Shown here piece after piece: positions 3,416 through 32,000 of a stretch of 32,000 nucleotides of DNA. The notes below the pieces were generated by a model. The model made no database searches and was not told where the DNA came from. It worked only from the letters and a program-made list of their open reading frames with translations. How positions within the stretch are numbered: position 1 is the first letter of the stretch; each line of letters opens with the position of its first letter. Both the position numbers and the translations under genes were made by a program. Source of the stretch: Wallemia ichthyophaga EXF-994 (taxonomy: Eukaryota; Fungi; Basidiomycota); the NCBI RefSeq assembly GCF_000400465.1, contig NW_008806274.1, positions 750,244 to 782,243 on the forward strand, written 5' to 3'.

Positions 3416-5628
3416 TTAGTCTATAAGTTCTTCAAATCTGCCCCTCTTTCTATGGATATGTGATTCAACGCTGTCGTCGTCCATGGCACGTTTAGCAGCA
3501 GCAGTAGCTATAGCCACTGGTGACGCTCTTCCTTGATAGTTGCTAGAGCCATCCATAGCACCCGAAGCTAATATACCTTGCAACATATTAACATAATTCT
3601 CATCTGACATTCCCATTGAAGCTAATGGATTAACAGTTTCACCATCATCGCTCGTCATTGCTTGGGCAGCTAGAGTTGCAGGGTTGAAGTGAGAATGAGA
3701 ATCCTGATCTTGATGATTTGGTTGTGGTTGTGGTTGTGGTTGTGCCTGTGGTTGTGGTTGTGCAGGCTGCTCTGTTTGCTCTGGTTGCTCCGACTGACTT
3801 TGTTGATTAGGTATAACTGCTTGAGCTGTCGATTGTAAGGCTTCAGATATGGATTGGTCATTGAGTGGTGGTAAACCTAGCGCACGTGGCACTTCACATA
3901 ATTGTTGCATCGTCTTGAGATGTAATAAGTGCTTCTCTACCATACCAAATAAACCTTCTTTGGTAAATGGTTTTGGTAGAATATCATTCATTCCGTGGCT
4001 AAAGTAGTTGAGAATGTCATTTGGATTGCTATTAGAAGTCATTGATATAATTGGTGTCATTGGGTCAAATTGTCTGATAAGATTTGTCGCTGCAACTCCA
4101 TCGAGATTTGGCATGACAATATCCATCAACACTAAATCATACTTGGTGTAATTCATTTTGTTTACCGCTGACACTCCATCGTCCGCAACATCTATAGTGC
4201 ATCCGAATATTTGTAGAAACTTGGATGAAAGCTTCCTACACACTGCATCATCTTCAACTAGCAATACCCTCGGTGGTACTGTCCAATGAGCTTCAGGTTT
4301 TTGAAGACTTTGTAAGCTTATGGGGGGATCTTGGGGTTCTTGTTTAACAATCGATGTAGATGCACCGAGATTTGAAGTTTGTGCGGCTGGTTGTTGTTGA
4401 TAAACGTTGTTTTCACCGTCTCGTTGTCTGAGCTGACCCAATGTGAAGACTTTCAAACCTTGAGTTGAGGGAGTTGCAGATGTGGGGGCTGACTGAGCTG
4501 TGGATTGAGATGCTGACTGAGATGCTGATTGAGATGTTGAAGTCACTGATTGAGGCTGAGGGCCATGCACCATTGGTGGTGTGGGTTGTACTTGGGAGGA
4601 AGATCTCTTTCGTTGAGAAAACTGAGTGATTCTGCCATTCAAATCGTTTAAGAGGTTAAAGGAACTTAAAGAAGCATCTTTGTAGTTGGATATAAGTCTA
4701 TTAACGTTATCGCTGTCAAGGTAATTGTTATTACTTGAGATATTCTGTTGGATGAGGTGATGTAAGATACTTTGCATATGTTGATCCTGGTTGATAAGAG
4801 AGCGCTGAAAAGACATGATACCATTTACTACGTGATTATAATTGGATTGTAAGTTGTTCAGCTGAAAATTCGATTCCTGTTGATTTTTGGTCAAGTTTTC
4901 AATTTGTTGTTGAATGTTAGTAATCTCGTTTACAGTTGTCTGGTTTTGTAATTCTTGCGCAGCGTTTGTATTCTGTTGTTGAGCAGTTGGTTTACCTTTA
5001 CCAGTAGGAGCTTTTCTTTTGATATTTTCAAGGGAATGACGACAGTTAGCTTTGAATTCGGGATGTTTAAATTCCCAAGTCTGATCACCCCAAGGTTTCT
5101 CTTCACCTTCCTCCCTCTTTACTTTGTGAAAATCGTATTTGTTTAGTTGTCTAACGAAAGAAGCAAAGTTTGAGTGTTTGAAGTGGCGTGGAAGTATTTG
5201 TTTAGTGAACTCGTTCATTTCCTGTGTAATGTCAGATGTGAGTTTATATAACATCAGATAACACACCTTCACAACAAATGATTCACCTGAAGGGGACCAA
5301 CAAACAACAGAAGAGTACTGCGAATCTTCAAGCATCCTTGATTAAGAAATATAAGTCGTTTACTTGATAAATCTTAGTCAACCACTCACATGAACAATTT
5401 CTTTACGAAATCTGAAGGACCAGAAGAATTGTTATTCATTGGTTGAAATGAAGGTTGAATAGAATTATCACTCTGTATAACTGATTGCCATTGATCTTGT
5501 GGTTGTGCTGTGGTTGTGGGTACAGTACTAGCAGTACTAGGAATACTTCCTGAGCTCCCAGCACCACTAGAATTCCATCCGGAATTCCAATTATTTGTTG
5601 AATAATATAAATTATTATTGAATTCCAT
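3416..5628 (-). CDS. SKN7: HSF-type DNA-binding domain plus response-regulator receiver transcription factor (Skn7/Prr1 family), ~704 aa
   Basis: Exons 5628-5390, 5336-5267, 5221-3416; introns 53 and 45 nt. HSF motifs SDFVKKLF.MLED and ILPRHFKHSNFASFVRQLNKYDFHKV, followed by a coiled coil. Receiver domain RVLLVEDD..YDLVLMDIVMPNLDG..ISMTS..DILPKPF with the phospho-acceptor Asp. Confidence 0.93.
3719..3762 (-). repeat. Imperfect hexamer repeat (CAACCA/CAGGCA-type) encoding a Gln-Pro tract in SKN7
   Basis: GTTGTG reiterated on the + strand; translates as QPQPQAQPQPQPQP. Confidence 0.8.
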
Positions 5629-13773: not shown

Positions 13774-15050
13774 TCACTCTCCTCTCATCTCCTTCCCTTG
13801 GCTCACCTTGCTATCATTCTTAGACAACTTCCCAAACAAAATTTTCACATCCCCTTTGATACGCTGGCTGAAGCTGCGTTTCGGTGTGACTTTGCTGCTC
13901 TTTTGGCTGCTCACTTGGCTGCTGTCGTGGCTGTTCTCTTGCGCATTCGCTTTTTCATTTTCTTGTGCACTTTCACGCGCATTCTCCTCGGTATTTTTCA
14001 CTAGGTTAGCAGAAGAGGATGGAGGAGATACATTGTGGGCTGTCTTGTCAGTCGCTATGGTATTAGCCTGTTCAGACTTAGTCGACTTGGCCCCATCTGC
14101 GCTCTTACGTTGGGCATATTTGTTGGCTACAACAGCTGATGCAGCGCCGGCACCACCAACACCCGCAGTAACACCTGCCAATGCTTCTGTAGCTTTATTA
14201 CTTTCTTGTTGCTTCTTTTCTTCTGTCTTCTTCTCGTTAAAGGTATTCTCAACACGCGCAGCTGTTACGCCTTCAATGTGTGGTATCGTCGATGGCTCCG
14301 TCTGCAATTTCTCCAGAGTAGGGAATGTACCACTGGGAAATTCCATTGGATTTGATAAAGTGGAGAATTTGGTGTGTTCATCTTGTGCTCTACTTGCCTT
14401 GGTTGACTCATTTGCTGCAAGACCTGCAGCCACACCCGTACCTGCGCCGACACTTGCGCCTGTCAAACCAGCAACAGCAGCAGCAGCTTTCTCTGAGTAT
14501 TCTCCAAGCACACCTGGCTGAGTGTCATTTGCGAGGTCTTTCACGGGTATGGATGGATCATGATCGTCTTGTTTGAGCTTCTCAGCAACTTCATGCAGAT
14601 TGCTCGCTTCTTGATCGTTGGCTGATTTCGCAATATGATCTGCGTATGCGTCTACTTTCTGAGATGCTGTGTCGTACGCTCTCGCTGCTGCGTCTTTAGC
14701 CTGACCAGGGGCGTCTTTGAGGGACGCAGCGGATGCACCCGCGCCTGCTGTACCCGCTGAAGCGTATCCACCGGGCATTTTGGTGCTCAAGTCAGGGGTA
14801 CTAGATTGCTTATGTTCATTCTGCTCCTTATCAGCGTTGGTAATTGGATTTGAGAGGTTGGCGGTGGTGTTTGTGGTGCTTTCAACGCCCTCCGCACCAT
14901 TTTCACCGCCAGTATCCCCAGCAACTCCAAGTGCGTCTAGGGAGTGTGAGAAATGTGATGATATGCGTGCGTATTCAGCCTACTCTGTACATCGTTAGCC
15001 CAATCATCAGAATTTTCTGGTGGCGTGTTTATTGCTGGTTTTTGGTTCAT
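13774..15050 (-). CDS. Ala/Gly/Thr/Lys-rich hydrophilic LEA/hydrophilin-like protein, ~409 aa
   Basis: Exons 15050-14984 and 14936-13774; a 47-nt intron GTAGGC..CTAG extends the ORF-track frame to MNQKPAINTPPENSDDWANDVQNALGV. Low complexity, no Cys, LEA-like AKDAAARAYDTASQKV. The C-terminal SFSQRIKGDVKILFGKLSKNDSKVSQG resembles a CsbD-like motif (inference). Confidence 0.75.
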
Positions 15051-15176
15051 CTTCGGTGTTATGATGGAAGCGTCAGCGCCTGCGTCTACGTCACTGGAAA
15101 TTAAGACGCGTATTTGGAATTGAGGACGATGGAAATGGTTTAAATTTTATTTTAACATTTCTACTTAAATTTAAGT

Positions 15177-17191
15177 TTATAATACATTTTTATCTAATTC
15201 ACGTGTTATCACCATCCTCACCTCACGCAAAGTCATTGCCGATTTCCGCTTCGAAGGGCTGTCAACTTCTGTGCCTGTGAGCGGTGATTTGGGTGATTTG
15301 GGTGACTTTGGTGGGTGTGTTGTGCCACTACTAGCATTGTTTGGTGTGGTAGCGGCAAGCAGTGGGTGTGCACTTGGTGACGGTGGCACTATCGCGTGTC
15401 CAGCAGAGCCACTTAAACCGCTTAAACTTGTTGGCATCTCCAGATACTCCACCCTATCTACCAACTTGAGGAAAACAAAATCCGGGCAAAGATTGCATAG
15501 CATCTTCAGCGAATCGCATGCTTCAGCTGTTTGTAGTTGTACTGATCAGCACAGCACACTGTGATAAATTACTTCAAAACTCACCAGCTGACATTGCAAC
15601 CTTGCTTGATTTGACAATCACAGTCGCAACCTCCTGCAATGGCCTCGCTCTTCTTTTGCGCGATGTTGGCGTCGGCAGACTGGCAGAAGGCGACGAAGGC
15701 ACGTTTGAGACATTCGGGGCGAATAGCCTGTTATATAGTGTGATGAGAAAGAGTGCTTTAAATGGTCGCAAACCCAAATTAAACCCACAAATAAACAGCT
15801 TCAGCAACAGCTGGTAATCTAGACAATCTACTGCGACGTTGGAACACCTCCGACTTGACAGCGTGTGATTGTTTGTTGAACTCACTGCCTCCACCCAACT
15901 GCTCCTCTTTTGCCTTACGCTTTAGTTCCATCTTGGCTCGGACGCTGGCTTCGAGGTTCTTCTTGCGCTCCGCCATGGTCATAGTTGACGGAGCCTTGGT
16001 GGGCGTTGCCGGTGCTTCTTTGGATGGCGTTCTGAACACATCATTCACATTACTCTCATCTTCCTCCGCCATCATTGTTTTGGCTTTCTTGAGCGAACGC
16101 GGTGGCGGTGAGGGTGACTTGACGCGTGCACGCTTGACTGGAGCAGTCTGCATCAATTTCTCAGCATTATTGTATGAAGCCATTCTCTTCAGTGCATCTG
16201 ACGGTGTCTTCGGTCTGGTTTTCATAGGCAGCTGCGGTAATTGCTTTGAAGGCGTGTTTGTGACACTGCGCAGGAAGTCTCCCGGGTATACTTTTCTCTC
16301 AGAAGGCGACTGAGGCGTGCTGTCCTCTTTCTTGGCTTTCCCTTTAGATGCGGTGGATGGGGGTGTGAGGAGACCTGATCTGGTTATAGAGGAGGACAGT
16401 TGATTGGAGTGTGATTTGGGTGTTTTGGTGACATCTTCGAGCTGGCTATTCATCCATGTCTCGAACTGCTCATTAACCCAAGCTTTAGCCCTCTCTGTCA
16501 CAATCTCTCTCCTCCTGTCTGTCTGTCGGAACCACTCATCTTTGGCTCTGGCAAAGTCTCTCATGACCCCAATCGCACCTTTTGCAGTCTTCTCCTCTTC
16601 GATAGCCACTTCCATACCAATAGAGTACTCTTTGACGCGTGTGGTGGCGATGATAAAGCCAATATCGTCGTTCCAGAGATATTTGAGTTTAGATAGAGTA
16701 GCTGGATTAAGGTTTTTGGAGCTAGCTGATGCGACGAGCTTCGACAGCGTATCAAGATCGATGAGGGTATCAAAACGGAGGATGTGTAAACCTTGTTTGT
16801 AAGTCTTGAGTGAGGAATGCCCAGCTCTGTGAGATTCCGAAAAAGGCATGATTAGTGGAGGAGGCAAGGCTGAGGAAGTTGATAAGTGAATTCTGAACGC
16901 GTTCTCAACGGCATTGTGTAGATCGATAAGGCTCTCTACAGCAACAGGCAGGCGTGAGTTGAGTTTTGAGCGCGTAGGGCGTGCAGGCGGTGCGTTGAGA
17001 GAGTATGAAGGGCAATGAGAGGATGAAGTGGTGGGTTGTGGCTCATTAAAATCCTCTTCATCAGATGAAGGCAAATCCTCATCTAATAACCTGCGTTTGC
17101 CCTTGTTGGCGGGAGTGTTACGCGTTTGTTGAGCGAGTTTGAAGAATGGGCTGTCTTGCAAGTCGATATGGGCATTTCTAGGCGTTGGCAT
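15177..17191 (-). CDS. CDT1: DNA replication licensing factor Cdt1-like protein, ~631 aa
   Basis: Exons 17191-15789, 15727-15585, 15526-15177; introns 61 and 58 nt. The spliced C-terminal winged-helix-like region reads RRSRLSRLPAVAEAVYLLF..RKRRARPLQEVATVIVKSS..MSAAEACDSLKMLCNLCPDFV..VEYLEM..LREVRMVITRELD, as I recall for basidiomycete Cdt1 C-termini. Confidence 0.78.
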
Positions 17192-17200
17192 TGTAGAATA

Positions 17201-17206
17201 ACGCGT
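17201..17206. promoter_or_regulatory. MCB-like element ACGCGT in the CDT1/RDI1 divergent gap
   Basis: Exact hexamer 10 nt from the CDT1 ATG. cdt1 is an MBF target in fission yeast, but this hexamer is common in the window. Confidence 0.3.
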
Positions 17207-17306
17207 AATTATAATAAATTGATTTCACTTGTGTGACGAGACGACGAATGAGTTGGATGCGCTTGAACAAGAACCCAATCGACGACGATATCAACGATAT
17301 TTAAAA

Positions 17307-17997
17307 ATGACTGAAAAGATTGACGATCAAGAGCTGCAGACATCTACAACGCCTGGATATAACCCTGGAGAGAAGAAGACGCTGGATGAGTACGCGCAGT
17401 TAGACTCAAACGATGAGTCATTGAACAAGTTTGTCTGGCTTTTGAAGCTTTATACATTCTAATCCACCCGCCTCAGATGGAAAGCTTCCCTTGGTATTGG
17501 TGCAGGCGCTGCGAATGAAAATGGCCCAAAGGTTGGTGTCATTGGTATCCATTTGACATATCCCCCTCACAACACACAACACACAGATTGAATTCATCAG
17601 CCTCTCGCTCGAATCAGCTACTCGCCCTGAACCAATCGTATTCAACTTTGCAGAATTAGAAGGCAAAAAGGAACATATCAAGAAGAATCCTGTCTCTATA
17701 AAGGAAGGCACTGAGTACAACGTTAAATTAGACTTTAAGGTCAACCACGACGTCATCTCTGGCTTGAGATACGTTCAGGTCGTCAAAAGAACTGGCATGA
17801 CTGTCGACAAAATGGAAGAAATGGTTGGGTCGTACGGTCCTAGCCAAAATCCTTATGAGAAGAGATTTGCTACTGAGGAATCTCCTTCAGGAATGCTTGC
17901 TAGGGGTACTTACAGTGTCAGATCGCGTATCGTCGATGACGATGGCCATATCTACGTCGATTTCGACTGGGCATTCAAAATTTCTAAGGAGTGGTAA
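17307..17997 (+). CDS. RDI1: Rho GDP-dissociation inhibitor, 195 aa
   Basis: Exons 17307-17428, 17477-17531, 17587-17997; introns 48 and 55 nt. Motifs GYNPGEKKTLDEYAQLDSNDESLNKWKASLG, IKEGTEYNV, SGLRYVQVVKR, MVGSYGP, PSGMLARGTY, W.FKISKEW. Confidence 0.95.
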
Positions 17998-18294
17998 TGG
18001 TTTATTATTCGATACTGCTCTATTACTCTCCTCGCTTTCTCACTTTCCACACTTTTCTCTCTTCACTTCTCCCACTTATATCACACCAATAACAAACACC
18101 CAGTTCTATGGAATATCAATACGAATATCTCCCTCTTTTTACTTTGAAATATCAAACGTATATCAAAATACATGTTAGATTTACAAAAAGCTGAATGAAA
18201 AATCTGACTTGATGGGAGTGATACAGTTGTGGAATGGTTTTGTCGATACATCCGGGTACAGCTAGCAAAACAACTTCACTTCAAGTGCCCACAT

Positions 18295-18526
18295 TTATTG
18301 ATAGTTCTGCGCGTTGTAGGCATCCATGGCAGCTTGGTTCTTGATTGTACCGCTTGATTGAGTTGGTGTAGCGTGAGCCTGGTAGATGTTTACCTAGTTA
18401 TTGAGTTATTAAGGCATCTTACTTCCATGGCCAACTCACAGAACGTGCTTTGTGCATGTTTGTAGGCGTTGGTACGGCAATTGCGATAGCAGCGATTGAT
18501 AAGACAGCGTATCCGAATAATTTCAT
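18295..18526 (-). CDS. Small secreted Cys-free prepropeptide, 61 aa (absent from the ORF track)
   Basis: Exons 18526-18440 and 18393-18295; 46-nt intron GTGAGT..CTAG; start context AAAAATG. Product MKLFGYAVLSIAAIAIA-VPTPTNMHKAR-SVNIYQAHATPTQSSGTIKNQAAMDAYNAQNYQ. Confidence 0.82.
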
Positions 18527-18996
18527 TTTTAGGTTGTGAGGTGGGGGTTGTAGTTTTGGTTGCGATAGAAGAAAGAAACTATTCCATTATGGGCCTAATC
18601 TTTACCCAAATTTAAAATTTTCTTTGTGACTGCGGATAGTGAAACGAAACAGAGTTGTGCTACTTGTGAGTGTTTGTGGATTTGAAACTGGTTAGGTTTG
18701 GTTAGCCAGCAACTCTTAACTCAGCCTTAGCTTCACATATCCATATTGGGTTTAATTGATCACTTCCTTTTCAGTCTGAGAAGATAGCTCGGATAGACAT
18801 CAGCTGCAGATCATCAAATGCTGCTGAAAATATGCAGAGGAAGAAGCTGTCGATTAAAACTTACTGCAATCCTCACTTTCAAGACAATTTGCACACATCA
18901 ACTCATCAAATCAAATCAAGTCGTAATTCATGTAATCGTTATTTGCTATCACATCTGAAAAGTGGGCTAATCACGCTGCGAAATGTTCAATTCAAT

Positions 18997-19269
18997 CTAC
19001 TTCTGCAGTTGTTCGTCCACTTTGCCCAGCTTACCCATGTGGGAAGAAGGGCGAGAGCTTTCGAGGACTGCTGGATCGTTGGTGAACACGCGATCATCCT
19101 GTGTGTTGAGATTAGCAGGCTATCAACGACGTTGGCTGTTACCCACCACGTTCAGAGTCTCTGCACCATCACCGCGAGAATTAGTCGTCGCTGTCGTTGT
19201 GTCTTTCTTCATTTCTCCTTCCTCGTTGCTGTTCTTAAGCTTGTTGAGCATATCCTTTGTAGTTTGCAT
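18997..19269 (-). CDS. Small hydrophilin-like protein, ~74 aa (63 aa if a further intron is spliced)
   Basis: Exons 19269-19147 and 19098-18997; 48-nt intron GTGGGT..GCTAAT..CAG. A 53-nt 5'UTR intron GTATGT..CAG (19322-19270) ends directly before the ATG. Product MQTTKDMLNKLKNSNEEGEMKKDTTTATTNSRGDGAETLNVDDRVFTNDPAVLESSRPSSHMGKLGKVDEQLQK. Confidence 0.75.
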
Positions 19270-19686
19270 CTGCGTAGTGTGGCGTTAATTTAGCTCAATT
19301 GCGTCGAAACACAATCACATACTGTTTAGATGTTCGTTGTGAGATATTAACCGTGGAAAGTCGTCTACGATTGTTCTCACCCTCTCTACACATGACATTA
19401 CGCACTTGAGACATATGACGTTTTCATTTCTTTTCACACACTTATCTTGTTCCATTGAATGTTTACAAGCGCGGTCAACGAGAGTATTTGCTACTGATGC
19501 TGAGCTTGTTTAATGCATAGCAAATGCATCCGTTGCTAGTCTGGTGATGATGCAACTGAATGTTGAATAGCTAGACTGGAAAGTAGCGGAATTTTACAAG
19601 GCTGGTAATTACTCAGCATCATACGGCTACTTAAGGAGTCAAAAGTGATGAAGATTTTCACCTGCTTATGGATTTGGTAAAAATAA

Positions 19687-19760
19687 CTCTCCGAGGTGGG
19701 CTCGAACCACCAACCTCCCGATTAACAGTCGGACGCGCTAGCCAATTGCGCCATCGGAGA
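19687..19760 (-). tRNA. tRNA-Asn (anticodon GTT), intronless
   Basis: TCTCCGA-TG-GCGC-AATTGGCTA-GCGC-G-TCCGA-CTGTTAA-TCGGG-AGGTT-GGTGG-TTCGAGC-CCACC-TCGGAGA-G. Full cloverleaf, G discriminator, T-run terminator just downstream. Confidence 0.97.
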
Positions 19761-20525
19761 TTTTTTACCTGTGCTAAAGCTATAGCCTAATTACACTGAT
19801 TTTGTATTTCCCGCTCAAATTTTCATCGATTGTATGCTTTTCCAACCGTTTTCGACTAATCGATTCATCTACACGCATTGCGCGTGGCACTGACGACAAC
19901 ATATCTCATAGAATTTCTTATGTAAAAGACACATAATGACCAGAATCACATTAAAAAGAAAGATTACCAAGATCAATATTCAGTTTGAATTAGGTCCAAT
20001 ACTCAGAAATTTACACTCTATACAAGCCCTTTACGAGGTCTTCAAACCGCAATTGACTACGTACCAAAGATTCTCCGGTAATTTAGCGTAACTGAGAACC
20101 ACCAACAATTTACAATTTACGACAATAGTCGAGAAACGCTTCCAGCAAATTTGGTACCCCCTTGAGTCCTCATGCTTTAAGAAATATTGATGGACGCAAT
20201 TTTAAACATGTATGGTCTTAACAATATCTTCAGATCTCATCATCATCATCATGTTTTTGCAAGCTCGTATGGTAATTCATCAGATTCCGAAATCTTCAAA
20301 AACACGCACATCATCTTTAAACTCTCAATTTGTTCCGGTCGTACGTCGATGCTATTCGCTGTCACTGTGATGATACCTGGCTATCGCCAGACGGGCCTAG
20401 CACCGTCCACCCTTAGATAAAGACCCTATAATGTAGCTGCCATGCTTTACTTTTGTTCAATGCTACCTTTGCCGCTGCTAAAGACCACATCCACACGTCC
20501 TCAGGCCTAACCTCGTCTCACAAGA

Positions 20526-21125
20526 ATGGTCACGTTCCAAATATCTGCAGTACGCTGCGCAATATACAGTATCCTGTCAGCAGTAGTGATAGCTTATTTT
20601 ATACCTAATAAATTCATTACCAATCTCAAAAGTATAGCTGCAACGGTAGTAGCTGCGTCACTTTTCCAACACCTAAGTAAATACAGCCTAGCAGCGGATA
20701 GTCGATGGTATTCACCCCCGGATCATAACAAAGTGCCTTGAATTACCGCCAGCATCCTCTTAACGACTCTTATACTTCGAGATATTATCTTTAGTCGGAC
20801 GTCAAACACACCTAGGCCACAAATGAAGAGTAAAATAATAACGCTAATGGTTAAATTTCTGATGGAATGCTTTTATAGGAGTTTCTTTGTGTGTTTCCCA
20901 TCTTGGTTTGTCACATTGTATGTGAGAGATCGGCTGCTAATGGAAACGTATGCTTATCTTATTGCTTTATTATCGGTTGCATGGGTTGGATTGCGCGGTT
21001 TTATAGCTCTACTAGAGACTTACAGGGAAGGAAAGCAAGGGACAACAGCGGCAGACGAGAATGCCATATCATTAGAGAATAACGGCGATTTCGAGAAGGT
21101 TAGTAAGCTCGCTGTTTATAACTGA
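20526..21125 (+). pseudogene. Multi-TM membrane protein paralog A (199 codons) interrupted by one in-frame TGA at 20739-20741
   Basis: ORFs 20526-20741 and 20823-21125 share a frame and are joined by 27 sense codons (ITASILLTTLILRDIIFSRTSNTPRPQ). Gapless by-eye alignment to the 21505 ORF. The status (pseudogene, split gene or recoded) is unresolved. Confidence 0.7.
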
Positions 21126-21492
21126 ATATCACACCGTGCATCAAGTGTAATCCCTCTAGATGTCGCTATAAATGTCTCTAAATTAAAGCATAATGAGACC
21201 TTGATACATGTTAAAACAGCATAATGAAATCCTAATACCTAACATTAGGGCGCAGACATTAAGCATTGCATTTATCAGCGCCGCGTCGACTTGCTTTTGA
21301 CCGATTTGGAAACCTTATGGTGTTGACAAATAAAGTACTTGGCAGCAAATACAAGCACTAAGTATTACCAACGCACTCTTTTGTGTTTCAAACGCATCTG
21401 TACTCGCCTGGATTCTTTACTTTTAAATGAGTCCATATCGATAAAATTCGAAGCTCGCCCGAGCCCCGCGCGCATCCAGGCCGGCTAAAATC

Positions 21493-21527
21493 TCGTTCTT
21501 TTCTATGATGTCGTTCTTTTCTATGAT
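21493..21527 (+). repeat. Perfect 17-nt tandem duplication (18-nt period) spanning the start codon of paralog B
   Basis: TCGTTCTTTTCTATGAT at 21493-21509 and 21511-21527; gives in-frame ATGs at 21505 (also 21508) and 21523. Confidence 0.9.
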
Positions 21528-22059
21528 CGTAACTCGTATTATAGTGGAACTTTTTTCATTTATACTTCTCATTTCACTGCAAATTTATGGATTAAGGAAG
21601 CTCCTACCCATTTCATTAGAACATGATATAAAGAGCCAATTTATCTACGCAATAATCCCAGGGCTCTACGGAGTCCTCAACGATTATAATCTATTACCAG
21701 ATTTCAGATGGTACGATATACCTGACTACTGCGTATTGCCTTGTACAATCGCTGGAGCGCTTTTCCTGGCTGTCGTTATGCCAGAGAAAATGTTTGCTTA
21801 CCATCCTTCGTTCAAAGGCGCTCCACCACACAAGAACAGTTTCACTCCACTCTTAGCATACATTATGACGTTTTCAGACACAAGCTTCTTTCTCACTTCT
21901 CCACTCTTCTTATGTATGGTTTTGGCGTCCTTCTTTTTGGAGGATAAAAAGCCTTTAAGAAGAATGTTTGGAAACGCGGTAGGTCTCTATGCGATTATGG
22001 CGGTTATGTCACGTGGGATGGTTGAAGTGATAGAGGCGTGCAGCGAGGAGAAGCCGTAG
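21505..22059 (+). CDS. Multi-TM (about 5-6) membrane protein paralog B, 184 aa, with a 43-codon coding-like in-frame tail after its TAG (to 22191)
   Basis: Several hydrophobic segments. Shares KS..L(F/Y)..L..Y.L..D.RWY..PD....P and SFF...P with paralog A in register. After the TAG (22057-22059) the frame continues KATAEKRVLPEEEKGRNEMTGEAAESAGEKGLLKKEEIEVDGS to a TGA at 22189-22191. Confidence 0.7.
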   Translation: MMSFFSMIVTRIIVELFSFILLISLQIYGLRKLLPISLEHDIKSQFIYAIIPGLYGVLNDYNLLPDFRWYDIPDYCVLPCTIAGALFLAVVMPEKMFAYHPSFKGAPPHKNSFTPLLAYIMTFSDTSFFLTSPLFLCMVLASFFLEDKKPLRRMFGNAVGLYAIMAVMSRGMVEVIEACSEEKP

Positions 22060-22589
22060 AAAGCAACAGCCGAGAAGAGGGTTCTACCAGAGGAAGAAAA
22101 GGGGAGAAATGAGATGACAGGCGAAGCAGCGGAATCTGCAGGCGAGAAGGGGTTGTTGAAGAAGGAAGAAATAGAAGTTGATGGAAGCTGAGACAATGAA
22201 ATACCAATGACGAGACATTCATAGACAAACGAAGAGCTTATATGCATGATGAAGAAATTGAGATAAAACTTACTTATTGATATAGATGAACTAACGATAG
22301 AGTGATATAGAGTGCAATAGTGATATTTTCAGTGTGTTTTGATGTCTTGAAGTGAGAGAAAGCTGAAATACGAGACACTATAAATAGGTAAAAGGAATCA
22401 GTGATAGGCTAAAAGCATGTTGCGAAATTATACATGACATCGATCAGGGAGAGAAAGCCTTTACTGTCACGACAGTAAACCCTTTTGTTTAGAGTATCGG
22501 AATATTCGAAACCTAGATTGAAGGAATAGCGGAGCATGTACCAAAGTGACTTGTTCGTATTGCAGACACAAGCAAATGTCGTCGTACTG

Positions 22590-23292
22590 AGCGAACAGCT
22601 CTTAATCTTGATCAGTTAGACCGACATGAACGAATTAGAGATGTTGAAGTGTCGGAAAGACGTCTGTGAGTTCAGCGAGGCTGAGATAATTCAAGGGGGC
22701 GATGGAAGACATGTCCTAAAGATGCTGGAGAAAGTGAGGAATTGGGAGCACTGCGCGGTGAGCTCGTTGAGTGTGTCGGAGGAAGGGACCATGCTCACGG
22801 CGTCTTCTGGCAATGTTACCCGGTTGAGCTTGGAATAGTCTGTGTTAGTTAGTCCGCATGTGTATCTTGGGGAGTTATCCATGCGCATGTCGAGAGTGAG
22901 TGTGGAGAGGTGCGGGAGGCGTGAGATGCCATGTGAAAGGTCAATTAGAGCACCTATTTGGGCATTTATGAAGAAATTGAATCCTCTTTTAACTTGTGCT
23001 TGAAAGTGACACTTGCGCCAATTGTATGTTTTAGATACTTAACTGTCTTTTCAGAGCTGAGAAAGTCGATCAGGTTGTCAATCTAACCAATATTTCCAGT
23101 CGATATAAATGTTTCATGGTCAAATTAAATTAAGGCGCAGTGAATGTGTACCAGAGGATAGACTGGCAGATCTGTTGAGTCTTCTGGGAGTTGCGGGAGG
23201 TTGCTGAGCTTAAATGTGTGAATTTTATGGTTATTCTTGTCCAGAGTGGATGTCTGCTGAGCCCAGCGAACTTTTGCCTTCACTTTAGACAT
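22590..23292 (-). pseudogene. Degenerate multi-exon gene with LRR-like fragments
   Basis: Fragments MSKVKAKVRWAQQ..LPVYPL, IDNLIDFLSSEK.., ..LSHGISRLPHLSTLTLD..YSKLNRVTLP and HFLQHL*DMSSIAPLNYLSLAELTDVFPTLQHL*FVHV lie in shifting frames with TAG/TAA stops. One intron-like GTACAC..TTAG is visible. Boundaries are approximate. Confidence 0.4.
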
Positions 23293-23388
23293 TCTAGGTG
23301 CAAGTAAACAAAGGGAGCGATGCAATGTAGAATTGCGATATAGTAATACAATCTAGCAATACATAAGTCTATAAAAAGGCATTGTTAC

Positions 23389-24037
23389 TTAACCAAGGAT
23401 CGTGATTTGCTGATAAACCAAAGAAGGCAGGCTTGTTCTGAGTTCATCGCCCAGATCACAGACTTGGTCGTATAGATGGTGCAGTTGCTGCTTATCGTGT
23501 GTATCTAGCTTCTGTCCAAGCTTTTTATCAACGACCGGCACAACAATCTTCTTTGTCTTCTGTTCAGTGTATCTGATGAGGTTATTGATCTCACTGTAAT
23601 TGAAAATTGTAGTGTTCTTCATGTTGAATCTGCTCAATTCGCCACTAGCACTTTCAATTACGCTATTCAGCTGCTCCAGTAGGCTATTCATCACTCTAAC
23701 ATCTCCAGACGCGCTAATATCCTCAAGTTCGCTCAACGCCTGCGTGTAGTTGTTATTCAGATCGATATTTCTCACTATCTCCGCTATCGATAGTTCCCGT
23801 GGAGGCGTTGTTGTGGTATTGGTGGCGGTATTATTGAGAGCGATTGGTGTAATAGTTGTACCCTGTTTTTCACCCTGAATACCCTCTGTATTTCCCATTA
23901 CTTCTTTAACCAAAGGCTGAGCAAAAGCAGTGGCTATTTGAGTATCAGCAATTAGGCATTACGGCACCACTGATCCACCCACCTGCAATTGCAATCGCAA
24001 ATGCACTAAAAATTAACCCTATTTTATTCAGCAACAT
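23389..24037 (-). CDS. Secreted protein of unknown function with a Thr-rich stalk and several N-glycosylation sequons, 199 aa
   Basis: Exons 24037-23983 and 23933-23389; a 49-nt intron GTGGGT..GCTGAT..TAG adds the signal peptide MLLNKIGLIFSAFAIAIAATAFA-QP to the ORF-track frame. Confidence 0.8.
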
Positions 24038-24285
24038 GGTTGTACTTGTGTAAGATACTAAACATTGTTTCCGAATTTGGGCGCAGTGAGGCTGCGGAAT
24101 TTAGCAAAATGACGTGATGGGTGTAGAGGTATAAAACACACCAAATAATACTTCCACTCCCAATCCCACTCAGTGACATATATTTTTCTGTTCCTCGCCA
24201 CTCCAATCTGTCAGTCTTATTTTTATTCGTACCTGGTGCTATTTATACCATGGCCAAGATGATCTTCATATATCGTCATACAACA

Positions 24286-26783
24286 CTAATCCAATCTCGG
24301 CTGCTTGTTTTGCTGCTTAATCTCTCCAGTGTCGCTCTTGCGCTTCCCGAATGTTATCTTGCCACCGAGTTTGAGTCCACCGGCTTGTGCGCCTGCGCCT
24401 GTGCCTGTGCTTGTGCTTGCACCTAAACTACCAATGGGTGCGAATGTCGACTTGGCGGGCTGCTCTTGCTGCTCCGGTGCCGGACTGCTGCCGACGGGGA
24501 CGAAAGAGGAGGTGCCATTAGCTTGCGTGTGTTGATTATCTTCTGGAGGAGCAAGTGTACTAGTGCTAGTGCTTGCAGTTGTATCATCACCTGCCCTATT
24601 ACCAACACTTTCAACTGCATTCCCACTCCCACCGCTCCTCTTCTCGAGTCGAGAACCAGCGTCGAACAAAGAATCACTCTGAGGAGCAGCACCTCTATTA
24701 CCAACAGAGAGCACCATATGTGCTGAACCAGTGGCTTCTCTCCTAGACTGAAATGCCCCCATGACATTGAGCGGAGTTTCGCCACTAGTCATAGCCATCT
24801 GCCTACGTTCCATCTCAATTTGTCTAAGTTTCTTCTCCTGCCCCTTGGTACCCTGACCTCTACCATGAAATTTATAATTGAGGTATTTCCACGCCTCCTT
24901 AGCTGTCTGCGCGCGCCCAGTCTCGTCATGGTACTTGATATCGACCGACGGTTTATAATTGCGCTCGAATGCTTCTTTGTCTTCCTGGGCAGAACGTGCG
25001 TCGCGCGAGCGCAATTCACGATCACGATCCTGCTGCGACTTGGTCTCGTCGAGACGGATGCGTTGGCGGTGCTCCTCGCGTACTACCTCTCGCGCGCGCT
25101 GGTCAGCGAGGAAATGTAGACTTTCACTCTGCACACGCTCTCGCTCTCGCTGTTCTGGCGTTAGTGCTTCTATCTGGCCCTGCTGCTTGAGCGACGCGAG
25201 GAGTGATCCGAGCCCTTTAGCGTGTGTGGTGTGTGTGGGGGGATTTGTGGGTGTGTTTGCGGTGGATTCCTTTTCGAAACCTCCGTCTCCTTGGTAACTT
25301 TGTTCTCCTTTCTCCTCCTCCTTCTTTATCCCATCCACATCCTCAATCGTTACATCCATATCGGCAGCCACGTCGAGGGGTTGGTCACCATCTACACTTA
25401 GATCAGGCTCCTTCTTCACACTCACACTCTCATGTACCTCTTGCGCCTCTTGTTGCGGTGCCATTTGGACAGTACGTATGAATTCACTAGTATCGTCCAA
25501 CACCAGCGACTTTGCCTTTCCATCGAACTCTTTTTCCGTCTCTTCACCATTTCTGCGCATATCAATCTCATCCAGCTCGCCAATCTCAGCTGCTATTTCT
25601 TCAGGCTTCTTCTGGCGCACCGCCTTGCTCCGCCGCTGCTTATCTCGCCTCTGCTTCGCCAGGGCTATTTGGAGATCATCGTCATCTATCATGTTGGTGT
25701 GTTCAAGGTTGGCACGTTCACGTGGAGCGGGTGGTTTCATTTCTACATGTGTACTTGTACTTGTGTCTATCTGCATATCGCCATCGACCACTTCAGCCTT
25801 GCGTGTGCTCCTCTTCTTAGTCTTTTTGGTCTTTGGTTTCTTGAATCCTACATCACCCTCTTTGAGGAAATCGCTAGGCTGCTCATTCTTCAGATAGTCA
25901 AGACTGAGAAGAGTTTTGTTAAGTTTTTCGGTAGGCTGAGTGAGGGTGGAGTTGTCATGATTATCTGTGGTATTTTTAGAGGTGTGCGCGGTTGCATCAC
26001 CTAGTCTGAATCCACTATCTGCACCAGCGAGCTCCTCATCATATTTACTAAGTAGGGCTGGCTTTTTAGCTGCACCATCAGCTCCAAACTCCTCATCATC
26101 TAGACCTGTATACTGACGCGCTTTCACGCCTTTACTCAGCTCCGCTCTCTCTCTACCCCGTTCATCCTCTGCTAGGTCAAGATTTTGTAGCTCGTCATCG
26201 GCGTCGTCGAGCACAGCGCCGTCTTTGAGAGTAAGGATGTGGTCTTTACCCTCAGCGAAATCATCGACATTGTGACCCACTCTCAGTCCGGAGAGGTGGG
26301 ATTCGTTGTAGTTGGAATCATCCTGAGTGTACAGGTTGTCTTGCTCCAATTGCGCCCGCGCTACTCGCTCAGCAGCCTCTTTCTGCTTACGTTTAAGTCG
26401 TTTGGCCCATTTCTTTGCATCATCTTCTCCGGTATCCTCACCAAGCGTTTTACCTTTAAGGCGTTTATTCAGTTGTAGTTTGTTGCGGGTACGCTCGATA
26501 TTCACTCGCTGCTCTTCACTCTCGCGCTGCTTCTGCTCATCTGCTTTGAGAGTGGCGTAGTTGGATTCTGCTGACTGTGGGGGTTTTTAGAGGGGGTAAA
26601 ATATATATAAATAAAAATACGCGCACCTTTTCATTGTTCTGTGAGCTATTGTCATCTTGAATTGGCTGTGAGAGATGTGAGATGGGAGATGGAGATGAGA
26701 TGGAGATGCGTCACCTTCAAACCAAGCTTGACACGCATAGCGTTGGTGTCCTCGAGGGACATTGATTCCGTGGCTTGCGACAT
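24286..26783 (-). CDS. SNU66: U4/U6.U5 tri-snRNP protein Snu66/SART-1, ~798 aa
   Basis: Exons 26783-26715, 26665-26627, 26574-24286; introns 49 and 52 nt. HIND-like motif MSLEDTNAMRVKLGLKPI; LSGLRVGHNVDDF..ILTLKD; YKPSVDIKYHDETGR..KEAWKYLNYKFHGRGQG..KKL. Confidence 0.93.
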
Positions 26784-26865
26784 GCCCTATATACACAGAT
26801 GATGGACGTAAGAGATAAACAAGTAAATCGTCATGAGTAAAGGAAGAATACAAAATAAAGATAAA

Positions 26866-27488
26866 TCAGACAACGCCAGGCTTTGGGTCAGCGGTAGTTT
26901 CACCAGTGCTGACGGATTGAGCAACATCAATCGAGCCAGTGAAGGAGCCACCACGCTCTTGGGCCTTTGACTTGTAGTTTCTAATAGCAGAGCGAATAGC
27001 GTCTTCAGCGAGCATGGAGCAGTGGAGCTTGACAGGTGGGAGGGAGAGTTCGCGTGCAATGTCGGTGTTCTTGATAGCACCTGCTTCGTCGAGGGTCAAG
27101 CCTCTCACTCTCTCAGTCATGAATGAAGAGGAAGCGATGGCAGAACCACAACCGAAAGTCTTGAACTTTACATCAGAGATGAGTCCCTTATCGTCGACCA
27201 TTATCTGCAGCTTCATAACATCACCGCATGCAGGTGCACCAACGACACCAGTACCGACATCCATATCGTTCTTGTTGAGTGAACCGACCTGCCAAGTGTT
27301 TTAGTAGATATTCTCATCTTTTACCAGCCAACGCCACTCACGTTACGTGGGTTTGAATAATGGTCCATTACGCGTTCATGGTAGAGACGAGCAGTGGATG
27401 GTGCAGCCAATGTGCGTGGCTGTAGCTGAATAGCTGGCCTGGCCACGCTGGCAATTCTTGTCGAGCTTCTTAATACGTTTGTAAACAT
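26866..27488 (-). CDS. ISU1: Mitochondrial Fe-S cluster scaffold (IscU/NifU-N family), 189 aa
   Basis: Exons 27488-27342 and 27288-26866; 53-nt intron. Presequence, then YHERVMDHYSNPRNVGSL, VGAPACGDVMKLQI, FKTFGCGSAIASSS, LPPVKLHCSMLAEDAI. Confidence 0.97.
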
Positions 27489-27549
27489 GTTGATTGTTTA
27501 TGTTGAAGAAGTCACGGGCTACGTCACAGAGTCATATTTTTTGAAAATT

Positions 27550-28296
27550 TTAATCAATTTCATTATAGAGATCAGCTTGTCCAAATCCGCCGATTACACA
27601 CATGAGAACCATCCATGTGTTTTTGGTCGTCGGTGGGTTGTTGATATTGATCAATGACATAACACCCCTAGCCAATACTCTCAAATTACTAACGAGATTT
27701 CCACTAAAATCTTCAGGTCGGCTAGCCATCAAGAAGACTAACCAACGCGTTTGCAGATCACCGAGATTCTGGTTTTGTTGTGCATCCTCCACTAAGAAGG
27801 TCATTAGAGTGATAGCGGAGACGCAAGTTAGTGATTTTAAAATAGAAATCTTTGGTTCATGCGATTGATTGTTGATGTAATTGATCCACCCGGATCTATC
27901 CTTTTTACCTGGGAACGGCATGTACCCGTGTGGCAAATGGGATAGTGGGGGTGGCTTAATAGTGGCTATCAGACTCCGGAGTTTCTTGAAGTTTGCTGAA
28001 TAAGATTGCTGCCATTCTGAGTGAGTGAATGAGTGGCTGCTTGATTGGGTATTTGAACCAGCCACTTGGACTCCCTCATACGGATTCAACACGCGTTTCT
28101 GATTCGGTATTCTGGCTGCCTCGCGTCTTTTCTGGCGTTGAGCGTATCACACTCATAATCCCATCACCCACCTCACTGTAAACAGATACTGGGCTCCATC
28201 GGCCACCTCTCCACTGAAATCCATTGGCAATTCAGCCACAGGAAGTACTTGTGCGCCAGTTGAGATATCCTTGCTCTCATCCCGATCACTGCTCAT
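27550..28296 (-). CDS. Gemin2/SIP1 (Brr1-like) snRNP assembly factor, ~233 aa
   Basis: Exons 28296-28172 and 28126-27550; a 45-nt intron GTGGGT..AAAG restores QVLPVAELPMDFSGEVADGAQYLFTVRREAARIP (DG.EYL..VR.EA signature). The C-terminal half has WLVFLMA..P..LRVLAR and FGQADL. Confidence 0.75.
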
Positions 28297-28341
28297 CGCC
28301 GTGTCTGTTGAACAACGTCCACCACCATCCACCACCATATC

Positions 28342-29828
28342 ATGTCTTTGTTCAGGCCATTTAGAAATTCAATTCCCTTTAGGAGTTTATCCACCAACGC
28401 CGCCGCCTATATCCACCCCACACACCCAGACTCCCCCCAACCCCAGGCCACGCACGACAAACTCGCGCGCTACTCTCGCAGTGTTCTCAACACATACGCA
28501 CGCCCACCAATAATCTTCACCCGCGGAAGTGGTCTCTACCTCTACGACTCCCAGCACCGATCCTACCTCGACATGAGCGGCGGTATTGCCGTCAACGCGC
28601 TCGGGCACGCTGACGAGGGCGTGGCGAGGGTGATGGGCGAGCAGGCTGCCAAGCTCGTGCACAACAGCAACCTCTACCACAACGAGTGGTCGGGTGAGCT
28701 GGCCCACTTGCTCACCACCCTCACCAAGCTCCATGGCGGTATGGGCTACCAGCCCAATTCCGCCGACTCGTCCGGCCTCAAAGTCTTCTTGGCCAATTCA
28801 GGCACCGAAGCCAACGAGGGTGCCTTGAAGTTCGCCCGTGTCTCCGGCAAAGCCAGGGCAGAGAAGGTGGGTGTGGATGCCGCGGACAAGAGCGAGCTCG
28901 TCTGCTTCCGCAACGCCTTCCACGGCAGAAGTATGGGTGGTTTGTCCGTCACACCCAACCCCAAATACCAAGACCCTTTCGCACCTCTCATCCCAGGCGT
29001 GCGCGTCGGCGATATCAACGACATCCACTCCCTCACCTCCCTCGTTACCGAGAAGACATGCGGCGTCATCATCGAACCTGTCCAAGGTGAGGGCGGGATA
29101 CACAATGTGGATGTGGAATTCCTGCAGGCTCTCCGCAGACGCTGCGACGAGGTCGGTGCTGTGCTCATCTACGACGAGATTCAGGTGTGTGCCGTTTGTG
29201 TAGGTGGATAATGACCCTTCTAACTTTGCCTCCAGTGCGGTCTCTTCAGAAGCACCGACCTCTGGGCCCACTCCGCTCTTCCACCTAACGCACACCCCGA
29301 TCTCATCACCATGGCGAAGCCACTCGCAAATGGGTTCCCTATCGGTGCAGTGATGATGCGTGATAGTGTAGCTGAGCATGTGTCGCCTGGTGAGTGGTTG
29401 ATTTCTTTGCCACACGCGCCATTTAACTCTCTTCAGGCTCCCACGGCACCACTTTCGGCGGGTCACCACTATCCACGTGCGTGGCACACCACGTACTCAC
29501 ACGTCTGGCGCAGATGCCCGACTTGAAGGCGCGCGCGGGAGTTCTGCGCGAGAGGCTCGACGGTCTCGCTGCTGCATACCCCGATGTGGTAAAGTCGCCG
29601 GTGCGCGGGAGGGGCTTCCTCCTCGGCCTGCCTTTCCTCAACTCGGCTCACCCCGCACGCGCACTCACCCTCGCACGCCAACGCGGCCTCCTCATCCTCG
29701 TTGCGGGATCAGACGCCGTGCGTATCGTGCCCAGTCTGACCATCGCTGAGAGCGAGATACATGAAGCTTGCCATGTTCTCGAAGCTGTTCTCGAGGTACT
29801 GAGGAGGGAGAGTGAGCATGGCGTGTAG
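28342..29828 (+). CDS. ARG8: Mitochondrial acetylornithine aminotransferase (class III PLP enzyme), 462 aa
   Basis: Exons 28342-29184, 29236-29389, 29437-29828; introns 51 and 47 nt. Motifs YLDMSGGIAVNALGH, NSGTEANEGALKFAR, FHGRSMG, EPVQGEGG, YDEIQCGL, DLITMAKPLANGFPIGA (PLP Lys), HGTTFGG, VRGRGFLLG. Confidence 0.96.
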
Positions 29829-29956
29829 TTGCGTGAGTGGGAATGTGAATGCGCAATCCACTGCCCGTTTATATGCTTGTTTGTAATCCATTTTAAAGAT
29901 AGATTTCGTTTATTTAAACCCACATCACTCTTATCAGCCACAGCCACACACACACA

Positions 29957-30929
29957 ATGCGCGGTCTGGAACGAGAGAGAAGAGCGAGCGAGCAACGCAT
30001 GGCGCCAGCCGAGGCAGTCGATCCCGCTATGCCCGTCCACGAGGGCTACAAGAGCCAATGGGCGCGTTACCGCAACATATATCGTGGCGAGCTCGCGGAG
30101 TTTCTCGCGACATTGGTCCTCATAGTAATAGGCGCAGGTGTAAATTGCCAGTATACACTACAGAACAGCGGTGTCGCCCTTAGTGTTCCTCTCACCTGGG
30201 CGTTTGGTGTGGCTGGCGCAGTCTGGGTGAGTGGCGGCGTCAGCGGTGGGCATCTCAACCCAGTCATCACCATCTCTCTGGCACTCTTCCGCGGATTTCC
30301 TTGGAGGAAAGTCCCCACCTACGTTGTGGCGCAGGTTGTGGGATGTTTCACTGGTGCTTGCGTAGCATATGCCAACTACTACTATTCTGTAGATCAGTAT
30401 GAGCATGGCTTACGCACTATTCACGGTCACACCGCCACAGCTGGCCTATTCTTCACAATGCCCCAACCATATCTGCCCGCTTTCAACTGCTTTTTCGACG
30501 AATTCTTAGGCACCGCTGTGCTCGTTGGTATAGTCTTTGCCCTCTCTGATAGATCAAACCTCAGCCCTCCACATGGCACAATGCCTTTCGCGCTCTTTCT
30601 CACCATCTTTGGTTTGGGTGCTGCCCTAGGCGGTAACACAGCGGGTGGGTTTAATCCAGCGCGTGACTTGGGTCCTAGACTCATGTGTTGGCTTGTCGGA
30701 TATGGCGATGAAGTGTGGTCTTTCTTCGGTCAGTATTGGCTTTGGTGTGGTTGGCTTGCCCCGCTTAGTGGGGGTATCGCTGGGGCTTTAGTTTATGATG
30801 TCTTCATTTACTCTGGTACTGATTCACCGATTAACACGTGAGTCGGCAGTTGTCTCACTTCCACTCTCCCCATTCTCACACACCCACAGCAGCAAACACC
30901 CGGATACTCTCGAATCCAGCCACGCTTAG
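29957..30929 (+). CDS. Aquaglyceroporin (MIP family, GlpF/Fps1-like subfamily), ~306 aa (start may be the ATG at 29999)
   Basis: Exons 29957-30837 and 30890-30929; 52-nt intron. AEFLAT..IGAG, SGGHLNPV (loop B) and NPARDLGPR (loop E). The Asp after the second NPAR is diagnostic of glyceroporins. Confidence 0.95.
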
Positions 30930-31254
30930 ACTGTTGGCTGTTCAAAACGGAATTATGTTGCTTGCCAATACCACATTCATGCACAAATGCACATGCACAT
31001 ATCTTCACTATAAACTGCATTTATCAAAGAGTACGAGACAAGTGAGCTACGATGAGGGTATTTGTGTAGGTTATTAGAATATTCCGTTGGTACCAAGAAA
31101 AGTGAAAAAGAGTGATGAAACGAGGGGCTTTCTGAATTTCGTCTTTCGTCATTCGTTCTGAGGTGGGAGTGAGCGTGTCAAACCAACACCACAGAAACTC
31201 CCCACTCACACTAATATGCTGCTGCTGATTTCGTTGTCGTGATTATCGTATCAA

Positions 31255-31914
31255 TCAAAATCCAAATGTGTTCTCTCCTGAGTCTGGCGTGTGTGTGAGC
31301 TGCGTCTGTATTATACCCCACACTCCACTCACAAGTAACGTATAAGAAGCCGTCCTCATCTTTGTGCTCATTGTATATTGCACTCATTAGCGCTGCAGTT
31401 GGTGGAAGCTCTTCATTAACGAATATGAATATGGCCTGGTGTGGTAAGTTAGAAGATACACACACACACACCATTCTCACCTTCTCTGGTGCCAGCTTTA
31501 TTCTCTTTCTGATTACGTAGACGAATTGGCCGACGGTGAGGTCCTTTGAGGCTGCATGAGCTGTGCAAGCTTTTATACCACAACCAAACCCACAGAAGGT
31601 ACCAAATATTTTTTCTTATCGATTGTTGGAATGTCTGTTTTATCTCCTTTCTCGCAAATTACCTGGCGTCATCGTTGAGTCGAGCCGGGTGGATGAATGA
31701 GCGCAACACCCACAGGTATTCTGTCTGGATACTTGGATCTAATCCTCTCAGCTTCAGCTTTGCGTTTCTCTGGAGATGGTTAGTTGTGTAAGTGGTTGTG
31801 ATTGGTGGCTGCGTATGGTGGATGCGTACCAAATGGATGCTCGTCCTTGTAGCTTGTTAGCAGTAGCTCATATCACTCACATCACTCCCTCCTCACCTTG
31901 AATTTAGATCTCAT
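31255..31914 (-). CDS. ATG8: Autophagy ubiquitin-like protein Atg8, 117 aa
   Basis: Seven exons: 31914-31897, 31845-31830, 31769-31714, 31662-31594, 31543-31481, 31435-31333, 31283-31255. Product [84 protein letters not shown]; Gly116 is followed by one residue. Confidence 0.97.
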
Positions 31915-32000
31915 GACTGTGCGTTATCAACAAAGCGCGGCGTTGCGAAACGCCTTAGACAATTTATAATAAATACAAAAACTGTGAAATTCAAGTGAAA

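Follow-up and report, generated by a model that had tools for sequence, protein, structure and literature searches.

Are two neighboring genes that are each broken by a single in-frame stop codon newly inactivated, or are they regulated by recoding or readthrough into short and long protein isoforms? This question is raised by a stretch of 32,000 nucleotides of the basidiomycete Wallemia ichthyophaga EXF-994 (NCBI RefSeq assembly GCF_000400465.1, contig NW_008806274.1, positions 750,244 to 782,243 of the forward strand), hereafter the window. In it, a preliminary description made from the letters alone had noticed a tandem pair of membrane-protein paralogs: copy A, with one internal TGA, and copy B, with one internal TAG. 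The comparison with intact relatives and with other strains indicates that both stops are, very probably, ordinary nonsense mutations in a decaying, copy-losing tandem array restricted to Wallemia, and that no recoding is involved. The recoding-like pattern (a stop in each paralog, a TGA opposite a cysteine, and a conserved tail after the TAG) finds its explanation in recent nonsense mutations when the intact relatives are taken into account.

Translation bears out the two frames as they had been described (Table 1). By chance, 12.5 stops would be expected in the A frame and 14.1 in the B frame, according to mononucleotide shuffles. The 127 codons of A that follow the TGA contain none, against 8.4 expected (P about 1e-4), while the openness of the 43-codon tail of B is not significant by itself (P 0.08). 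As had also been claimed, the TGA of A aligns with a cysteine of B (Cys80, TGT), with 46 residues between that position and a shared SFF motif in either copy. The best block between the two copies holds 13 identities in 39 positions (BLASTP, E 9e-7), the gapless identity over the full shared span is just 24/143, and the post-stop piece of A finds no match in B by BLASTP. The homology of the C-terminal halves is nevertheless established, because a gapless tblastn alignment passes through the stop of A (150 amino acids [aa], E 3e-8) and because a profile built without A, from copy B (hereafter B1) and the two intact relatives B2 and P0123 presented below, matches both pieces of A (E 4.7e-15 for the N-terminal and 1.2e-15 for the post-stop piece). 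The open frame after the stop of A is not due to chance and, by their alignment, A and B are collinear paralogs.

The intact relatives disclose what the two stops have replaced. An exhaustive HMMER profile search of 1.84 billion representatives returned P0001, P0124, and P0123 as the sole matches, and word-indexed searches with B1 and with the C-terminal piece of A as queries returned only the counterparts in L001, a close W. ichthyophaga-like genome (Logan SRR25394091). Two of the three proteins are fragments of one gene in that genome. P0123, in contrast to these fragments, is an intact family protein of 253 aa, found in L006 (Logan SRR25399871). The SART-1 protein of the latter organism has 73-76% identity to that of W. 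hederae and 56-60% to that of W. ichthyophaga, and by this sequence L006 appears to be a W. hederae-like species. The P0123 locus is syntenic with the A/B site and comprises the family gene, an F-box-like gene, a 199-aa gene, and SART-1. At the stop of A, P0123 reads GTG CCT TGC ATT where A reads GTG CCT TGA ATT; at the stop of B, it reads AAG CTG GAA AAA (residues EKLEK) where B reads AAG CCG TAG AAA. The second intact member, B2 (229 aa), lies beside B1 in the strain L005 and also carries sense codons at both positions (Table 1). Since the intact relatives have Cys and Glu codons at the stop positions, both stops are single-base nonsense changes of sense codons. The tail of B had been proposed to be conserved coding sequence, which agrees with the sense codon and tail of P0123 and B2; on this comparison, what lies 3′ of the TAG is ancestral coding sequence. 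Further family members, which the preliminary description had suggested looking for by tblastn and profile searches, exist: P0123 and B2, with sense codons at the stop positions, and the B copy of L001, with GAG at the position of the TAG. P0123 is nearest to A, and as the identity exceeds 40% in both halves of A, the inactivation of A must be recent relative to the species split. Apart from this, a segment of about 50 residues, a loop plus one helix, is tandemly repeated within P0123 (residues about 97-146 and 147-196; L006 3032-3793), and its two copies remain about 50% identical by eye and recognizable in the DNA.

Outside these copies the family has a very narrow range. No Pfam family matched B1, the A pieces, B2, or P0123; the one Per1 match, of P0123, stayed sub-threshold (E 0.014; 15.5 bits, with the cutoff at 25.3) and was treated as chance. 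A profile search of PDB sequences gave no relative at E up to 5, the JGI metagenome contigs scanned contained none, and exact-sequence look-ups of the window B1, its 100-aa open reading frame (ORF) of A, and the B2 of L005 returned no record. The family is also absent at the syntenic site in W. mellicola and W. hederae; it is therefore dispensable in the genus and has been lost repeatedly in it. In W. mellicola (L007), tblastn matches at 16600-17900 were very weak, non-collinear, and all of E > 0.2, and were not accepted as relatives. An unannotated hydrophobic ORF of 135 aa (L007 16610-17017, minus strand) sits at about the expected site of the family there; with E > 0.2 it was not accepted either.

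The distribution of the stops among strains rules out a technical origin. The reference strain EXF-994 itself (L009, record KE007224.1) is identical in sequence to the window, at 100% over window positions 14286-32000; L005 (GCA_004918415.1) and L011 (GCA_004918455.1) are other NCBI strains, and L001, L003, and L004 are independent Logan assemblies. The TGA of A is present in all six, and the TAG of B1 in all three assemblies that bear B1 (L009, L005, and L011). Neither stop is an assembly error and neither is private to one strain, two objections that the preliminary description had raised against itself: the TGA occurs in all four haplotypes. Because it is common to all the sampled strains, the inactivation of A is older than their divergence.

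The strains differ, moreover, in the number of copies. L005 matches window positions 21378-22192 twice, around a unique spacer of 419 nt, and its order is the following: A with the TGA, B1 with the TAG (one substitution relative to the window), the spacer, and the intact B2. As neither the window nor L001 has a counterpart of the spacer, the three-copy form is ancestral and the two-copy forms are deletions. In the window, B1-specific bases run until about 22088 and are then followed by the downstream flank of B2, which places the crossover in the roughly 100 bases that are identical in both tails. In L011 the copies are arranged as in the reference, and both stops are present. L001 is about 99% identical to the window, save for a sharply bounded island of 430 bp in B that is about 27% divergent. 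Its B copy is B1-like to about 21590 and B2-like from about 21720, and carries a 1-nt deletion, a frameshift that splits it into ORFs of 152 and 88 aa; the 152-aa product is found on two contigs. By its sequence, this copy is a frameshifted B1/B2 chimera. The island was also considered as a hyper-divergent allele, which is ruled out by the two B copies of L005 and the chimerism of L001, and as the product of mutation resembling repeat-induced point mutation, which is ruled out by the presence of all substitution types and of indels. The 18-bp duplication at the start of B1 (Table 1) is single-copy in L001 and present in both B1 and B2 of L005. When the ‘B2’ alleles of L001 and L005 are compared in their N-terminal part (L001 1425-1814), the synonymous divergence (dS) is 0.12, while the flanks differ by about 1-1.5%; L001 being a chimera accounts for most of this value, though perhaps not for all of it. 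It is important to note that strain comparison across such arrays pairs non-orthologous copies; here, this made a segment seem 27% divergent where the surroundings differ by about 1%.

The two-B haplotype may be frequent. The contig of L010 (GCA_004918405.1 SPOO01000073.1) ends in the shared B tail, at window position 22074, and in about eight strains (cluster members P0126, P0128, P0130, P0131, and P0134) the contig that bears SART-1 is only about 18-22 kb long. L010 presumably carries a two-B haplotype that broke its assembly, though this falls short of proof, and the short contigs suggest that this haplotype is common and breaks short-read assemblies. Each haplotype has at most one intact copy, and that of the reference lacks any. 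The tandem pair of the preliminary description was thus correct as regards A and B, but it missed the third and intact member, B2, deleted in this strain, and with it the variation in copy number.

The divergence between strains also tells whether the sequence of A is still constrained. Between the window and L001, the eight codon differences of A comprise 0 synonymous and 8 nonsynonymous changes. Seven of the eight lie in the post-stop piece, and these include a second TGA in L001, a CGA-to-TGA change at codon 85. Six flanking ORFs show 32 synonymous and 17 nonsynonymous changes in the same comparison (Fisher’s exact test against A, p=6.5e-4). Purifying selection is therefore not acting on A, on either side of the stop. 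Between the window and L005, A has two nonsynonymous differences and one synonymous. For B1, one substitution among three strains is too little divergence for an estimate of constraint. Between B1 and B2 the ends are near-identical and the central region is 27% divergent, with a dS of 0.30 and a ratio of nonsynonymous to synonymous divergence (omega) of about 1.1, a pattern that fits gene conversion of the ends together with weak or mixed constraint in the middle. The simplest proposal of the preliminary description, a lineage-specific family newly inactivated by single nonsense changes, is in line with the sense codons of the relatives, the unconstrained state of A, and its second TGA.

What each stop would do to the protein can be judged from predicted features. 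The family probably comprises small membrane proteins, about 200-250 aa long, that are helical and end in an acidic, disordered C-terminal tail; their location in the membrane is suggested by hydropathy, which gives four to five membrane-spanning segments. An AlphaFold2 model of the intact B2 from a seven-row alignment is of low confidence (predicted local distance difference score, pLDDT, 43.8; predicted template modeling score, pTM, 0.23), and only its helix pattern was used: helices at 4-33, 43-63, 75-101, 115-145, and 150-182, and a disordered tail at 183-229. The best conserved element of the alignment, D-x-RWY-x-x-PD-Y-x-x-VP, stands just before the third helix, and it is followed by the Cys in B1, in P0123, and presumably in the ancestor of A. 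On this helix pattern, the TGA cuts the A protein after the second predicted helix and is destructive. The TAG of B1 falls about two residues past the last predicted helix, and only the acidic tail, whose character A, B2, and P0123 have conserved, would be lost, possibly a tolerated change.

Taken together, A is a pseudogene with high confidence, and B1 is a tail-less allele of uncertain function, whose 184-aa product may or may not work. From the homology, the ancestral codons, the sharing of the stops, the haplotypes, and the relaxed constraint on A, we infer the lack of function of A and B1 as well as the order of events. The ancestral arrangement in W. ichthyophaga would have been A-B1-B2, an array that would now be decaying. 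In A, a Cys codon (TGC or TGT) would have become TGA before the sampled strains diverged, and the remainder would have drifted neutrally since then. In B1, a GAG-to-TAG change would have removed the tail alone and left the 184-aa protein. B2, the sole intact copy, would have been deleted from the reference by unequal homologous recombination in the near-identical tails of B1 and B2, and another lineage (L001) would have recombined in the 5′ parts, yielding the frameshifted chimera.

Table 1. Positions, in the window, of the features of the A/B array and of the adjoining gene remnant.
Feature	Position	Strand	Basis and remarks
Copy A	20526-21125	+	199 codons, single internal TGA, terminal TGA; by translation
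Copy A, N-terminal piece, 71 codons	20526..20738	+	First hydrophobic helix and the conserved motif D-x-RWY-x-x-PD-x-x-x-VP; 47% identity to the N-terminus of P0123
Premature TGA of copy A, codon 72	20739..20741	+	Cys position in P0123 (TGC) and B1 (TGT); Phe in B2
Copy A, post-stop piece, 127 codons and terminal TGA	20742..21125	+	Open, family sequence; 42% identity to P0123
Upstream region of B1	21378..21504	+	Repeated upstream of B2 in the three-copy haplotype (L005)
18-bp perfect tandem duplication, TCGTTCTTTTCTATGATG x1.9	21493..21527	+	Tandem Repeats Finder (TRF); adds MMSFFS (six codons) and an alternative upstream ATG to B1
Copy B (= B1) frame	21505-22191	+	228 codons, single internal TAG at codon 185; by translation
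B1 ORF before the TAG, 184 codons	21505..22056	+	All predicted family helices; hydropathy, alignment to the B2 model
TAG of B1	22057..22059	+	Glu position: GAG in B2 and in the L001 chimera, GAA in P0123
Former acidic C-terminal tail of B1, 43 codons and TGA	22060..22191	+	Near-identical to the translated tail of the intact B2
Interval of the deletion junction (loss of spacer and B2 body)	22090..22192	+	Window compared with L005
Degenerate F-box-like gene remnant	22539..23295	-	tblastn; two in-frame stops, two high-scoring segment pairs abutting at 22715; unannotated in the reference

In these features the array resembles the nonsense pseudogenes of tandem orphan families that lose copies by non-allelic homologous recombination: the stops are single-base changes of the sense codons of relatives, and there are further lesions, relaxed constraint, variable copy number, and chimeras at repeat boundaries. 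It differs from them in that the Wallemia family is undescribed and unannotated and has no Pfam or PDB relative, and in that the truncation of B1 loses the disordered tail only and may be tolerated. The phenomenon is therefore an ordinary one; what is new is the orphan membrane family, unannotated so far, and its copy-number haplotypes. Intact members are B2, in some W. ichthyophaga strains, and P0123, in the W. hederae-like species. The locus also illustrates how a copy is lost by unequal recombination, here within a 4-kb unannotated stretch of the genome of a halophilic fungus, a genome that is reported to be gene-poor and reduced.

Several points weigh against reading the array as decayed. 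The transcription and translation of A, of B1, and of the regions after the stops are judged here from sequence only. The 127 post-stop codons of A are open and without frameshifts, a state that recent pseudogenization predicts and that readthrough would require. The synonymous and nonsynonymous counts are small, and 0:8 would fit positive selection too, while the omega near 1 between B1 and B2 is ambiguous between neutrality and a mixture of diversifying and purifying selection. Finally, B1 keeps every predicted helix and has changed by one substitution among three strains, so that it could be a functional shortened gene and not a dead one. In that case A alone would be dead and the TAG would simply be the new stop of a working, tail-less protein of 184 aa, a tentative reading that we consider possible but doubtful. 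It accords with the place of the TAG at the start of the predicted disordered tail, with the retention of all hydrophobic segments, and with the persistence of the TAG allele in haplotypes with B2 and without it. The conservation of the acidic tail in A, B2, and P0123, however, implies that the tail was functional ancestrally, and the annotations of the reference, L005, and L011 all lack a model for B1. The central omega of about 1.1 also counts against a working B1, and the divergence between strains is too low for its apparent stability to reveal constraint.

It is improbable, in turn, that A, B1, and B2 form a rapidly diversifying membrane family under conflict or recognition selection, in a recombining Wallemia population, in which truncated and null alleles are segregating functional states; the tail-less B1 could then be a distinct isoform-like allele. 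That copy-number, mosaic, and null alleles of a fast-evolving family of the killer-immunity or self/non-self kind are kept by selection is likewise quite improbable. Such selection would suit the near-identical ends and divergent center of B1 and B2, the mosaic alleles and three haplotypes seen in few strains, the patchy presence in the genus, and the predicted multi-pass membrane topology. On the other hand, relaxed constraint and gene conversion explain the pattern equally, the array lacks similarity to known families, including the Pfam wtf model, no haplotype retains more than one intact copy and the reference none, and an unrelated neighboring gene has decayed too. The wtf genes of Schizosaccharomyces pombe are comparable in being a small multi-pass membrane family that is clustered and fast-evolving, with gene-conversion mosaics and many pseudogenized members, but they differ from the Wallemia array in sequence (Pfam WTF model), and the latter has only two to three copies at one locus with no association to long terminal repeats seen.

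Recoding fares worse. It is highly improbable that adenosine-to-inosine (A-to-I) editing, which would turn UAG or UGA into UGG, or programmed readthrough produces short and long isoforms of both proteins, the second possibility that the preliminary description had put forward. The single stop of each copy, the lack of frameshifts, and the open frames downstream are what such a mechanism would leave, and the UAG of B1 has a U at -1, as fungal editing prefers. That preference is strong and extends to hairpin loops; the 71 known cases of stop editing in Fusarium are all UAG, and the known corrections are from UAG to UGG (PMC11156358). The adenosine in the UGA of A, on the contrary, follows a G, and neither stop region folds better than its shuffles (z 0.10 at the TAG of B1 and 1.36 at A), so no notable hairpin is present at either stop. 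The known leaky stop contexts are UGA-C/CUAG or UAG-CAR-YYA. Both stops of the array are instead followed by A (CCT TGA ATT ACC in A and CCG TAG AAA GCA in B1), and the region of A downstream of its stop is unconstrained and holds the second TGA in L001. The ‘PSC pseudogenes’ (premature stop codon pseudogenes) of Fusarium graminearum, which undergo A-to-I editing, share with the array the single in-frame stop, the open frames, and, for one copy, the UAG (PMC10776026, PMC11156358). They differ in the host, which for the array is a basidiomycete, as the preliminary description had supposed, and thus of a group where such editing is not established. A-to-I mRNA editing has been documented in filamentous ascomycetes, and earlier claims for basidiomycetes proved to be artefacts and were retracted (PMC11156358). 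They differ also in that one of the Wallemia stops is a UGA, not the type of substrate that is edited, and in that the array shows neither a hairpin nor constraint beyond the stop.

A UGA opposite the Cys of homologues is the classic signature of selenocysteine, and, as in eukaryotic selenoprotein genes, the TGA of A does align with a Cys of homologues, the paralog B1 and the orthologue P0123. That it encodes selenocysteine is hardly credible. Within 19000-24000, Rfam models searched at E values up to 10 revealed no selenocysteine insertion sequence (SECIS), only a tRNA-Asn and three sub-threshold hits to unrelated families. In addition, B2 has Phe at the site, so the residue is not redox-essential, the second TGA of L001 stands opposite an Arg, and the loss of the selenocysteine machinery is placed at the base of Dikarya (10.1101/314781). 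Introns that would remove either stop are ruled out, as the residues flanking each stop can be aligned with those of intact relatives that have a single exon, and the sequence offers no plausible GT-AG interval, and so is an alternative genetic code, since this is a standard-code basidiomycete and the long conserved ORFs of the window read normally.

Decay at this site extends beyond the array. Next to it lies a remnant of an F-box-like gene (Table 1), which, to judge from its interrupted frame, is a pseudogene. The orthologue runs without interruption in L006 (3981-5474), in W. mellicola (L007 14454-15925), and in W. hederae (L008, about 13860-15380). The annotations of the reference, L005, and L011 contain no gene model between window positions 19270 and 23388, a stretch of 4.1 kb that holds a tRNA-Asn(GTT) (19687-19760, minus strand), A, B1, and the F-box-like remnant. 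The reference annotation was built with GeneMark-ES (PMC3849046) and those of the population genomes with MAKER (PMC6738226). Such a gap is conspicuous in the genome of W. ichthyophaga, which is reported to be 73.6% coding, with 4884 predicted genes (PMC3849046), and the gene decay seen here, in the array and in the F-box-like remnant, fits a reduced genome.

The neighboring genes of the window are eukaryotic and encode a Skn7-like protein with HSF and receiver domains, a MYST acetyltransferase, the mitochondrial RF1, and SART-1/Snu66, whose ORF has 99% identity to W. ichthyophaga proteins. The Skn7-like gene (3416-5335, minus strand), which combines an HSF-type DNA-binding domain with a response-regulator receiver, is an ordinary fungal stress-response regulator. 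At 24286-27264 (minus strand), the MAKER models of L005, L007, L010, and L011 merge NifU/Isu1 and SART-1/Snu66 into one ‘hypothetical protein’ of 913-937 aa, while the reference keeps them as two genes, of 189 and 791 aa, respectively.

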